From: Phaeosaccion multiseriatum
Lineage: Eukaryota; Protista; Ochrophyta, other classes
Length of the DNA: 64,000 nt
NCBI GenBank assembly: GCA_965112735.1
Contig: OZ218955.1
Location: 2,046,001-2,110,000, forward strand
Direction: 5' to 3'
The position numbers and the translations under genes are program-made. Shown here piece after piece: positions 13,540 to 19,500 of the stretch; the first letter of the stretch is position 1; every line of letters starts with the position of its first letter. Below the pieces are notes generated by a model, which saw only the letters and a program-made list of their open reading frames with translations, had not been told where the DNA came from and did not search any database.

Positions 13540-16500
13540 ATGAGCGGGGCTGGGAGGAAGAGGAAGCTCTCGGAGGGAAATGACAGGGACTTGCGAAGTG
13601 ACAGGGAGTTGCGCAGCCAGCCACTGCAGCAGCTGCAGGAGCCGCAGCAGCTGCGACGGCAAGGGTCGGGGTCGAAGCAGCAGCAGGCGAAGGAGGAGGA
13701 GTCCAAGCCCAGAGAGTATATTATCCAAGCAAAGGATACGGTGGCACTGGTCACCCGGGGCATGGGGAGCGGCAGCCTGAATGCCTTCCACGACGCATGC
13801 GGCCTGGGCATTCCCGCAGCGGTGGCGCCGATGGGCTTTCTCGACGCTATGGAGAAGACGCGTGCCTCGGTGCACTTGGACCTCCTCGAGTTTGTCCGCA
13901 AGCAGCTGGAGGAGCGCATCCCCGGCCTTAGCAGGTGGGGCAGGGTAGAGAGGGTTGCTTGAGTGTCTCTTCCCTCAGCTGCGCTGTGCTTCTTTACAAC
14001 TCCTGCCAAATTATGACAAAAGTCCTAGAAGGGGGGCTTCAATCGAACTGAAGGTATTGGAACCTGTCGACCCTCCCTTTCCCCTTGGTACTTACTTGCA
14101 CTTGCCGGTACCCAACCCCCTCTCACCCCCCCCTTGATGGCAGGGACAAGATGTTGGAGCTGCTAAATGCGTCGTTCAAATACGTGACCGTGCCCGAGCT
14201 ACGATGCATCCCCCTCAAGATCATCACCTCGCTCAAGTCAGAGGTGAGGGAAGCAGGCCGGCCGGCCGCCAGGCAGGCAGGCAGACTGGCAGGCAGGCAG
14301 ACTGGCAGGCAGGCAGGCAGGCAGGCAGGCAGGCAGGCAGCATAGAGAACAAAGAGCAGCACCAAATATCTTTCTCGGCAACATCAAGAGTGAAGACAAA
14401 GGGAAGAGGAGAAGGAGAAAGGGCCCCCTTTCTTGTACTACACTCCCCCGCCCCCCACCCCGCAGATCCTTCTCTTGGATGATGCACATACATATACTGG
14501 AGATAGACATGGAGTGTGTGATTATCAATACACCCGGCTTACTCCTTAGTAGACCCATGAAAATACCCCATACTCAACTGTTAACCTGCAAGCTGCTTGC
14601 TCCCCCCCCCCCCCCCCTTCCCTTATGGCACACCCCACAACCGCACACCAAACACCACACACCACACACAACAGGTTCCTGACGACATCCTCACGGGCAT
14701 CGTACACTTGCAAAAGACAGCCCCGGAGCAGTTCGCCGGCATGAAGCTGCCCCTCTCTGTCCGCCAGCTGGCCTGGGAGAAGGACAAGAGCATCTTCGTA
14801 TCGGTATTGGAGCCGCACCTCTCTGCCTACACCGCTAACAGCGCCTACCCAAAGCTGCAGGCAGCGGCTGAGCTGGTAAGTGGGGTGCGTGGGGTGAGTG
14901 GGGTGGGTGCGTGTGTGCGTGTGTGCGTGGATTTGTGGGTGGTTGGGATGGGTTATGGGTGGTTGGGTGGGTTCGTGCGTGCGTGGATGGATGTGTGGGT
15001 GGGTGGATGTGTCTGGCTGGAACAAGATACATCCGTTGTTGTTGAAACTTAATGTTGTTGTTGTTGTTGTTGTTGTTGTTGTTGTTGTTGTTGTTGTTGT
15101 TGTTGTTGTTGTCGTTGTTGTTGTTGTTGTTGTTGTTGTTGTTGTTGTTGTTGTTGTTGTTGTTACTGTTGTTGTTGTTGTTGTTGTTGTTGTTGTTGCT
15201 GTTGTTGTTTGCTGTTCTATTTTTTTGGGGGTGTGTATGCCGTCCCCTCCGACGCTAATAAAAATCATGCATGCGACGGAACGTTTAAAAGGTGCACATG
15301 GGGAAGCCCTTCCCCACCAAAGTGCGCCGAACAAAGATGGCAGACAGCCTGGGCAGAGCCGCCAGGGAGATTGGAACCAGCGAGACGCTGCTCAAGTTCG
15401 CATGCGACATTGTTGCCTCGGGATACGCCGAAGGGACTGGGGAAACGCAAGGTACGAAGGGTGACTTGCGAGGAGAGAGGGAGGGAGGGAGGGGGAGAGA
15501 GGGAGGGAGGGAGGGAGGGGGAGAGAACAAGGGAGGGAGGGAAGGAGGGAGGGAGAGAGGGACGGAGGGAGGGACGGAGGGAGGGAGGGAGAGAGGGAGG
15601 GGGAGGGAGGGAGGGAGGGAGAAGAGGGAGGGAGGGAGGAGACTTGACACGACGCCCCTTGCCGCCTCCCCCCCCTCCTTCCACCACATACAACGCAGGC
15701 TACAGCCCCGAGCTACGCTGCTCCTTGCTCACCGATCTGCTCATCGTGGTGAGGGACCAGCAGCCTGGGGGGAGGAGCAGCGATGTGGACCGCCTGTGTG
15801 TACTTGCTCACTTCCTTGATACGTGTGTGAAGCAGCACCGCATGGACGACGGAGGTGAGTGAAGTGGGACATTGTAGTTCCAGTGCCAGTGGAAGTGAAG
15901 ATATGATTGATGATTGATTGCAGGGACCTCGATTTTTCGATTCGATATGTGATTTGCGTAATGGAATGCAGCAGAGCCACATGGAGTGGAAGGGCGAGAC
16001 GTTGGAGAGAGAGGGAGGGAGAGAGCGAGAGAGATAGAGAGAGAGCGACGGAGACAGATTTGTTTGTGTGCCAACATCCCAGCCACACCAACCCCCCACC
16101 ACACATACCCCCCCACTTCCCCAGCCCTCCGTGAAGTGCAGCGGCTCTTTAGCGAGGCCACAAACGTGAAATTTGATCCCAAGTGGACTCGAGCGGCGAG
16201 TAGTGCCGGAGGGGCAGGAGGAGCAGCAGCGGTAGGAGCAGCAGCAGCAGGAGGAGGAGGAGGAGGGGTGGGCTCTCGGGCCTCTGCAGGAGGGGCGGGA
16301 GGAGCAACTATACACGAGTCGGAGGTCCGACCCGCGCAGCTTAAGGCAGCGCTGAGGAAGGGGTTGACGGCGCTCAACCACGCGGACAAGAAGTGAGTGG
16401 TGAAGAGGGGGGGGTGGTTTTGCTTTGTGGGCACGACAGAATGATAGTCAGTCAGCGCATGTAGAGTAGAGGAGTACTCTCTCTCTGTGTCTCTCTCTGT

Positions 16501-19500
16501 CCTGCCCTCCTCTCCCTCCTCACTGACTCACTCACTCGACTGACTCACTCACTCATCCACTCACTCTGTCACGCACTCACTCACTCACTCACTCACTCAC
16601 TCACTCACTCACTCACTCACTCACTCACTCACTCACTCACTCACTCACTCACTCACTCACTCCTTCACACAATCACTCCCTCACACACTCACTGCCTCAC
16701 TCACTCACTCACTCCTTGTGTTGCGTCGGTTTGGAATTCCGAAGGGGAACGTTCGCCAACCCTGTAACGGACGACATTGCCCCGGGGTACAGCAAAATCA
16801 TCACTCACCCAATGGACCTCAGCACCATTAAGAGGAAGATAGAGCTCATAGACACCAAAGGAAAGGTGAGATGATGAGAGAAGAGAAGGGGGGGGAGGAA
16901 GGTGGTTGAGCGAGAGGGTGGGTGGGGGGGGGTCGGGAGAGAAGAAGAGAGAGGAGAGAAAGAGAAGAGAGAGTAGAGATAGAAACAAGAGAAAAAATAG
17001 AGAATGGGGCTTCGTTTAGCCTTGTTTGAGGGTACGCACTAGATGGTATTGGGTATTGGGCCCCAACATTTGTCAGCAAGAGCTCCTCCTTGCTCCTTGC
17101 TTTTTGGGGGTGTGCACTTGCTCCCCGACGATGAAAGGAAGGCAAATGACACGCGCTCTTCTTTTCCCTTCCCTTCCCTTCCCTTCCCTTCCCTTCCCTT
17201 CCCTTCCCTTCCCTTCCCTTCCCTTCCCTTCCCTTCCCTTCCCTTCCCTTCCCTTCCCTTCCCTTCCCTTCCCTTCCCTTCCCTTCCCTTCCCTTCCCTT
17301 CGTTTCCCTTCCCTTCCCTTCCCTTCCCTTCCCTTCCCTTCCCTTCCCTTCCCTTCCCTTCCCTTCCTTTCCTCCTCGATAGAAACAAGCGCCTCCTCCT
17401 CCTCCTGCTGCTGCTGCACCCGGTGCCGCAGGGACAGGGGCAGGGGCAGGGCTGACGGCGTACTCCAAATTCACGGCCTTTGACCGCGACGTCAAGCTCA
17501 TGTTCGACAATTGTATGAGGTGAGAAGGGAGGGCAGGAGGGGCAGGCGGGAGTGTTGTGTGGGTGAAAGGGCTGGGTCATTACAGCGTGAGGGCATAAAT
17601 GCACACACGCGCGCGCGCACACACACACACACACTGTACCCACCCACACGCCCGCACACGCACACGCACACGCACGCACACACACACGCGCACAAACACA
17701 TACAGGTACAACGCGGAGACGACCCCATACTACAAAGTCGCTCAGGAGCAGCTCAACAAGTGGAAGGCTGTGTCGAAGGGGCTATTGGCCTCTCTTCTCG
17801 CCGTGCCAGCGCCACCAGCAGCAGCAGCACCGATGGCAGTAGGCGGAGGAGGAGTTGCAGGCGGTTTGGCAGCGGGGGAGGGAGGAGGGAGGAAGCGGAA
17901 ACGAGAAGGTAGGAAGGAAAGGAGGGAGGGAGGGAGAAAGGGAGGAAGGGAGCTCGTGCGAAGGATCAATTTAGAGAGTCTAGCGATGATATCTCCCACG
18001 CCCTCTCTCTTGTCCCCAATGATTGAGAGTGTTTTGGTTCGCTTTCCCTTCACCCCGCAGGCGACGAGGCAGGTGGGGATGGAGGAGGAGGGGGGGGTCC
18101 CATGTTGAGACCATTGGCGACGACCAGTGAGGCGACGCTCGGCAAAGGAAACATCGCAGGCATCGCCGCAATGCTGCTGGCAGAGGTGCGTTGTGTCTTT
18201 GTGGTGCGTGTGCAGAGAGAGAGAGAGAGAGAGGAGATAGAGTTGCTCCCTCTCTTTGCCTCCTCCTCCCCCTCTCTAGTCTCTCTCCCATCTCGTCTCC
18301 TTCATCTCACCACCCTCTTGTCTCTTCTCTCCCTCCACCCTCTAGCCCTTCGCGCTGAAGCTCATCTGTGACCAGGCGCTGCTGTACCTTGGCGACTGCT
18401 GCGATGCGCGGATTCTACCCATGGAACATCACGCCCTGCCCTCTCTGCTGCAACTTATGGACATCGCGGGAGGGGCAAGGTCAGTAAGTCATTTACGAGG
18501 GTCAGTAAGTCAGTGACGCGGCACTCGCTCTTGATTGTCTCGAGTCTTCCTGTCCTGACACCGAGCACCCCTCTCCCTTCCCCCCCCCCCCTCCCCCCGG
18601 TGTGGACACTGAATCCTCTCTCTGCCTGATGGGATGGTACCCCATGGCGCCCCAGGGGCATGGCGGAGGCTGGCAAGGGCTTTGTCCCCGGTGTGGACGA
18701 GGATCTCATTCGACACGTCATGCCCAAGGTCGTCATGGTACGTGGCGCTCTTTTTCTCCCTTTCTCTCTCTCCCCGGGCCCGCCTCTGTAGACCCCTCCC
18801 TGGGCTCTGTCACTCCCCTGGGGCAATCTTTCCCACCCATCCGCCGACTGCCCACCCACACACACCTACCCACCCACCCACCCACCCCCTCACGCACCCA
18901 TGTCTCCTCTCCTCTGGCTCACCCCACACCCCTTCTTTGCAGCTGTGGGCTCAAGTCCGCTTCACTCCAACGGCCTTTGTGTCCGATCCGAAAGCGCTGA
19001 AGAAGCGATGGAAGAAGGCGCTCTCCTCGCACCCGCAGGTTACTCGCTTGCTGGCTACGCAGGTGACGTATAACGGACGGCAAGGGGCAGGGGCAGGGGC
19101 AGGGGCATGGATGTCTCTCTTGCTTGTTCTCTCTCTCTCTCTTGCTCTCTCCCTCCCTCTCAATCACTCGCCCTTGCTTTCTCTTCCTCTCTCTCTCTCT
19201 CTCTCTCTTGCTCTCTCTCTCTCTCTCTCTTGCTCTCTCTCTCTCTTTCTCTCTCTCTCTCTCTCTCTCTTGCTCTCTGTCACTATCCCTCTCACTCACT
19301 CTCCTTTGGCCCTCTCTATCTTGCTCTCTCTCTCGACCGTTCTTTGGCCTCCACACCTCCTTACCCCCCTGCCACAGCTGTGCAAGGCGTTGGAGAGCGG
19401 CTTTGGCGTGTGGGTGGCGTGGGTCCTGCCCATCGTTGCACTGGTGCTGCCGAGCCTCGGGAGGGAGCGTTGGTTCTGGGCCACGGCTGTGCAGGTGTTC

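Follow-up and report, generated by a model that had tools for sequence, protein, structure and literature searches.

The machinery that pauses RNA polymerase II (Pol II) probably has NELF-B and NELF-C/D as its ancient core. In animals, BRD4/P-TEFb couples acetyl-lysine reading to promoter-proximal pause release, the reader recruiting the release kinase. Here, a gene of the ochrophyte Phaeosaccion multiseriatum is described that lies on the forward strand, at 13540–20836, of a 64,000-nucleotide (nt) stretch of contig OZ218955.1 (assembly GCA_965112735.1, positions 2,046,001–2,110,000; hereafter the window). The exon structure and the collinear matches to a family profile identify it as a divergent NELF-B (COBRA1-family) orthologue, and we are confident that its product is NELF-B with an internal BRD7/9-like bromodomain. 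Human and animal NELF-B (COBRA1; PDB 8jj6_A, 8uha_V, 9j0n_V, and 6gml_V) shows N-terminal homology to this protein through the family profile and, in the model of a relative, its overall fold, but has no bromodomain. Whereas the animal reader brings the release kinase, the putative reader of the window gene would be carried by the pausing factor. The best explanation of the whole, which we consider likely, is a stramenopile NELF-B with a bromodomain inserted in a loop, whose binding to acetyl-lysine would bias pausing.

The closest described systems are the NELF-B proteins of other stramenopiles. According to the supplement and summary table of Chivu et al. (bioRxiv 10.1101/2023.02.19.529146 v2 / PMC11482795), all stramenopile NELF-B candidates contain a bromodomain; this record consists of a 2024 preprint supplement with its supplementary methods and PfamScan file, and the proteins of this layout were classed as NELF-B by reciprocal BLAST and hidden Markov model (HMM) searches. 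In Hondaea fermentalgiana, the PfamScan file lists COBRA1 at 151–313 (HMM 3–165), the bromodomain at 432–515, and COBRA1 again at 607–727 (HMM 172–286), and in Mucochytrium quahogii, it lists COBRA1 at 107–277 (HMM 3–173), the bromodomain at 356–437, and COBRA1 at 526–676 (HMM 189–340). For Phytophthora infestans, no COBRA1 is listed before the bromodomain (442–519), which is followed by COBRA1 at 592–699 (HMM 190–294); for Vaucheria litorea, COBRA1 at 3–162 (HMM 16–164) precedes the bromodomain (216–296), and none is listed after it (PMC11482795). These proteins share with the window gene the order COBRA1 N-terminal half, bromodomain, C-terminal half, with the insertion at HMM positions ~165–190, and the Vaucheria bromodomain also has the PV(S/T)D.IAPGY and MDLS.IK motifs in common with that of the window. 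The label given by Chivu et al. is “C-terminal Bromodomain”, without discussion of insertion or function, and no functional study of a stramenopile NELF-B bromodomain was found in the literature.

The window gene is therefore a further example of a known stramenopile design and not a new architecture. An earlier reading of the window, made from the sequence only (hereafter the sequence-only reading), had treated the combination of NELF-B and bromodomain as potentially novel; its BRD7/9-like domain, its NELF-B host, and the internal insertion were borne out, but the novelty was not, given the record of Chivu et al. Compared with the published stramenopile proteins, that of the window has diverged further, none of its exons matching COBRA1 directly, and differs in its long Gly/Ala linkers, a 26-residue insert in the AB loop of the bromodomain, and a gene of at least 15 exons. 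The closest sequence matches of the exon encoding the ZA loop, and of the relatives, are BRD7 and BRD9; here, however, the host is NELF-B and not a SWI/SNF subunit, and the rest of BRD7/9 is absent.

The bromodomain and its linkers are encoded by four exons. Upon direct reading, these exons (16125–16392, 16745–16865, 17383–17519, and 17706–17908; exons 6–9) are bounded by AG/GT, are in phase, and contain no in-frame stop. The codons at the junctions are AAG at 16392/16745, AGG at 17519/17706, and GGC at 17908/18061, with phase 0 at 16865/17383. The coordinates of the sequence-only reading were exact here, and its borders, phases, and quoted peptides were all found; a small correction applies outside its range of 16125–17908, where exon 10 ends at 18185 and not at 18186. 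In translation, exon 6 starts with the NELF-B segment ALREVQRLF (16125–16151) and continues with a Gly/Ala linker (~16190–16327) and helix α-Z of the bromodomain (16328–16392). Exon 7 encodes the ZA loop and helix α-A, as supported by Pfam PF00439, PDB, and family profile matches, and exon 8 encodes the 26-residue Pro/Ala/Gly insert of the AB loop (17383–17460) followed by helix α-B, as supported by Pfam and profile matches. By direct reading, exon 9 contains the Asn of the BC loop, helix α-C, a second Gly/Ala linker, and the sequence KRKRE. Thus, Gly/Ala linkers on both sides of the domain, as had been claimed, were read in exons 6 and 9. As the GT-AG pair 16866/17383 alone links exon 7 to the YSKFT helix in frame, the AB-loop insert is indeed coded; an alternative acceptor that would remove this low-complexity insert was sought and rejected, as none is in frame.

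The window gene was searched exon by exon or by stop-free piece, and fold comparisons were performed on a relative, P0004. Stop-free frames of such exon lengths are common in this GC-rich DNA (24–49% of arbitrary frames); accordingly, the evidence for the bromodomain is the domain match rather than the open frames. Exon 7 (16746–16865, 40 residues) matches PF00439 with 37 bits (E 3.4e-9; cut-off 21.7 bits) and exon 8 (17383–17517) with 16.4 bits, while exon 9 alone has no Pfam match. Against the PDB, exon 7 finds its highest-scoring single-domain matches in BRD7 and BRD9 (~37 bits), compared with at most 24 bits for BAZ2B and BRD2; TAF1 stands first in this list only through the sum of two weak domains. 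The PDB matches of exon 8 are weak and are all bromodomains. BRD7 and BRD9 are family IV bromodomains, together with BRPF1 and BRD1. The Tyr of the acetyl-lysine pocket (PGY) lies at 16788–16790 and the Asn (YN) at 17710–17712, and a further Tyr at Asn+6 (17728–17730) presumably corresponds to the gatekeeper Tyr of BRD9. The description of this domain as a complete BRD7/BRD9-like bromodomain with both pocket residues intact is thus supported, since PF00439 is matched above threshold, BRD7 and BRD9 lead the single-domain PDB matches, and Tyr and Asn were both found as stated. In the relative P0004, the left-handed four-helix bundle (α-Z, A, B, and C) is recovered (Z 16.6). Its bromodomain (model residues 580–707) aligns with those of BRD1, BRPF1, BRD7, and BRD9 with Z values of 14–16.6 and root-mean-square deviation (RMSD) values of 1.4–2.5 Å, and the template modelling (TM) score is 0.87 for both BRD9 and BRD1.

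Relatives of this protein were found in metagenomes. A scan with the bromodomain exon returned 47 loci, 12 of which match both flank profiles in the order N part, bromodomain, C part. By tblastn, a segment resembling exon 11 lies downstream of the bromodomain in seven metagenome loci, and in one of these (L013), a segment resembling exon 2 is also present upstream. Another relative, L011 (78–3155), is a single uninterrupted open reading frame (ORF) of 1026 residues with the order N part, bromodomain, C part, and the family seeded by it comprises 22 clusters of 690–1199 residues. The public labels of the members (P0004–P0024 and P0028) are only “bromodomain-containing protein 7/9” or hypothetical. 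In metagenomic relatives of ~900–1100 residues (L011–L014, L006, L008, L009, L016–L020, and L048–L050), the NELF-B identity was missed by public annotation. This family, from metagenomes and metagenome-assembled genomes, shares its architecture with the window gene and carries no COBRA1 annotation on its members; the similarity to the window is low, at ~19–35 bits per exon, and at least one member is one uninterrupted ORF.

A family profile (A1) was built from 21 longer relatives, with A2 used for the N-side exons 1, 2, 3, and 5 and A3 for exon 11. The family profile matches window exons 2, 5, 7, 8, and 11 in collinear order. Exon 1 (13540–13934) comprises the ATG, a Q-rich tail, and then the first NELF-B helices, of which 13834–13920 shows a weak collinear match to A2 positions 25–53, aligning to human NELF-B residues ~50–80. 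Exon 2 (14144–14243), a helix pair conserved in the N-terminal region of NELF-B, matches A2 positions 62–94 with 21.4 bits and an independent E-value (i-E) of 6.6e-7, aligning to human residues ~88–122. Exon 3 (14675–14875), in phase and assigned to the N-terminal half of NELF-B, has only a sub-threshold collinear match to A2 positions 166–187. Exon 5 (15699–15854) matches A2 positions 310–347 (6.8 bits, i-E 0.018) and encodes the helix equivalent to human NELF-B HYCTLRAELLMSL, in a region that pairs with human residues 224–245. The bromodomain exons 7 and 8 match A1 positions 516–547 (35.2 bits) and 552–572 (16.6 bits), respectively. Downstream, exon 11 (18346–18479) encodes the first conserved helices of the C-terminal half of NELF-B, as supported by tblastn and by a match to A3 positions 36–89 (21.9 bits, i-E 4.9e-7).

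The identity of the host emerges from this family. Among 177,635 PDB sequences, the N-part profile finds human NELF-B only, with an E-value of 1.2e-9 over residues 36–136 and a weak second stretch at the HYCTLRAELL helix. Apart from Bromodomain, COBRA1 is also the sole Pfam family found repeatedly in the members (4 of 21, sub-threshold). The AlphaFold model of P0004 has a predicted local distance difference test (pLDDT) score of 66.5 overall and of 80–90 in its structured parts. With this model, NELF-B chains rank top in Foldseek, with TM scores of 0.55–0.58 by target, and VIA-align superimposes model residues 183–1107 on NELF-B chain residues 14–554 with Z values of 21–22, covering 481–516 of ~550 residues. 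Folded alone, the C part is placed best on NELF-B residues 319/339–555 (Z 10.1–11.8, RMSD 3.5–4.2 Å), while the next unrelated match has a Z value of 8.9 and unrelated helical repeats lie 2–3 Z units below NELF-B. The proposal that the host is NELF-B therefore stands, on the N-part profile, the collinear exons, and the fold of P0004 over residues 14–554.

The bromodomain lies inside this fold. In the window, exons 5/6 (A2 positions 310–347) are followed by the bromodomain and then by exon 11 (A3 positions 36–89), the same order as in the published proteins with split COBRA1 matches. In the whole-chain alignment of P0004 to NELF-B, the bromodomain is an internal excursion with aligned NELF-B residues on both sides. 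The segments that flank the insertion are only ~14 residues apart in the Pfam COBRA1 consensus, representing canonical NELF-B, in agreement with the claim that they are nearly adjacent in the animal protein. The sequence-only reading had argued for an insertion and not a terminal fusion, and the collinear profile matches, the single-ORF relative, the structural alignment over residues 14–554, and the published split COBRA1 matches all support this. The best explanation is that the bromodomain, between flexible Gly/Ala linkers, is inserted in a surface loop midway through the COBRA1 fold, equivalent to the short GVKKGQEQVLG stretch of animal NELF-B (human residues ~295–320 for the loop). On the downstream side, exon 10 (18061–18185), in phase through the split codon GGC, encodes a Gly-rich linker, after which NELF-B resumes and runs on into exon 11, with the segment AMLLAE/PFAL straddling the junction 18185/18346.

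Several results weigh against reading the gene as a NELF-B with an internal acetyl-lysine reader, and they bear on different alternatives. The host might be an unrelated α-solenoid that resembles NELF-B by chance: no window exon or stop-free piece matches Pfam COBRA1 (PF06209) or human NELF-B in the PDB, the PDB searches including the N-terminal piece, exons 2, 3, and 11, and a 501-residue stop-free piece (18613–20115). Since these direct matches fail, the link from the window to NELF-B runs via the family profile. The C-part family profile finds no NELF-B by sequence in the PDB, and when the C part is folded by itself, it has no significant Foldseek match (E 0.2), does not bring NELF-B into the top rows of a wide VIA search, and matches many HEAT/TOG-like repeats with Z values of 7–9; its matches in the ESM Atlas are not specific. 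Exons 12–14 (18656–18737, 18943–19062, and 19378–19530), in phase and with AG/GT borders, are assigned to the remaining helical C-terminal half, but they have no significant profile or Pfam match, and exons 12–15 have no detectable relatives. As neither Foldseek nor the sequence profile gives a significant C-part match, weight is placed on the whole-chain alignment, whose Z values of 21–22 are far above the helical background, and on the mapping of the C part to the correct half of NELF-B. A chance resemblance is also difficult to reconcile with an N-part profile that selects NELF-B alone from the PDB, and Chivu et al. (PMC11482795) independently classed stramenopile proteins of such layout as NELF-B. 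An unrelated host is thus highly improbable. The gene model itself might instead be an artefact, with the bromodomain exons being skipped or forming part of another gene, nested or separate, and the NELF-B mRNA lacking them. RNA runs, which shared 5–6% of the sampled words, gave only microsatellite contigs on 17340–19125 and no exon joints, and exons 6–9 total 729 nt, i.e., 243 codons, so that joining exon 5 to exon 10 keeps the frame; such an isoform is possible and would lack both the bromodomain and the ALREVQRLF helix. Exons 7–9, however, total 461 nt, so that skipping them breaks the frame, and the NELF-B segment ALREVQRLF and helix α-Z share the same uninterrupted exon 6. Moreover, L011 encodes the identical order in one ORF, and the published stramenopile proteins, several of them from transcriptomes, share it. 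An artefact of this kind is accordingly very improbable.

A more serious alternative concerns function: the bromodomain may be kept as a structural or protein–protein module, binding for instance an acetylated or non-acetylated partner in the NELF/Pol II complex, with no chromatin reading and no new wiring of chromatin to elongation. The pocket details vary, since the ZA- and BC-loop motifs of the window differ from those of the metagenomic relatives, where PMCIR replaces PMDL and no YY follows the Asn. The low-complexity AB-loop insert of the window copy could, in addition, disturb the fold. Against this alternative, the Tyr of PGY is invariant over the family and the Asn nearly so (kept in at least 90% of the members with 37–77% identity to P0004), and the P0004 domain superposes on BRD9/BRD1 with an RMSD of 1.4–2.0 Å. 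Conservation of the domain in labyrinthulids, oomycetes, and ochrophytes also argues for a maintained pocket. We regard a purely structural or partner-binding role as rather unlikely.

In the proposed mechanism of NELF-B with an inserted reader, the helical NELF-B body would assemble with NELF-C/D as in animals. The family IV bromodomain, tethered by the Gly/Ala linkers, would bind acetylated lysine, most plausibly on the histone tails of promoter-proximal nucleosomes or, alternatively, on a partner within the complex. Such binding would bias the recruitment of NELF, its site, or its dwell time on Pol II. The sequence-only reading had suggested that the pausing factor may read acetylated +1 nucleosomes or acetylated Pol II. 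That acetyl-lysine reading by this domain matters for pausing is possible, although we place it somewhat short of an even call. A stronger proposal holds that the loop insertion is a true one conserved in labyrinthulids, oomycetes, and ochrophytes, that its pocket is under purifying selection, and that stramenopile NELF itself docks on promoter-proximal nucleosomes that are acetylated or on an acetylated factor associated with Pol II; it is offered tentatively, and is doubtful as it stands. If it were true, chromatin acetylation would gate pausing directly and not via a BRD4/P-TEFb-like relay. As for the partner subunit, Chivu et al. reported stramenopile NELF-C/D, and many of these candidates have N-terminal WW domains, while some green-algal NELF-B candidates combine MOZART1 with two to three COBRA1 domains (PMC11482795). 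Therefore, the NELF core has been decorated repeatedly outside animals.

The extended gene model begins with the ATG at 13540, ends with a TAG at 20834–20836, and has at least 15 exons, with AG/GT borders and phases in agreement. In addition to the exons described above, it includes exon 4 (15337–15451), in phase and with AG/GT borders, and, from open frames, exon 15 with an acidic and Gly-rich C-terminal coding region (19822–20836). In this 3′ part, the coding sequence passes from frame 0 into frame +1 within a (GGA)n/poly-G run near 19990–20100: frame 0 meets a TAA at ~20116, and a conserved-looking C-terminal ORF goes on in +1 to 20833. This change is either an assembly indel in the homopolymer or an unusually short intron. 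Further searches for relatives added little. The profile word search with A1 gave one further member only, the metagenome scan with exon 3 found no relative, the word search with exon 14 matched nothing, and the protein atlas search with P0012 gave no usable match. Exon 1 (13690–13932) had no significant relative, and no self match, among 1.84 billion representatives; its matches there to UCH, adhesin, and DASH/RasGAP were rejected as spurious.

Nearly every intron of the gene is filled with long microsatellites or short tandem repeats, including (GTT)n, (GGGAGGGA)n, (CACT)n, (TCCCT)n, and GGCAGACA-like repeats, with such stretches at 15050–15210, 15470–15640, 16540–16700, 17160–17370, and 19540–19780. 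The (TCCCT)n tract also serves as the polypyrimidine run ahead of the acceptor at 17383. Downstream, on the same strand, a neighboring stop-free frame of 646 residues (23294–25231) combines a NUFIP1 domain (35.7 bits) with several CCCH zinc fingers, ahead of a Gly-rich tail that is very long.

Because the architecture is already on record, the value of this locus lies in refinement and as a prompt for a functional test rather than in discovery. The window provides a well-resolved, intron-rich ochrophyte example of NELF-B with a bromodomain, and together with the structural comparison, it places the domain inside the fold and not at its end, which matters for modelling the orientation of the reader in the paused complex. 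A eukaryotic supergroup with a putative acetyl-lysine reader built into NELF-B would represent a natural experiment in the wiring of chromatin marks to early elongation.

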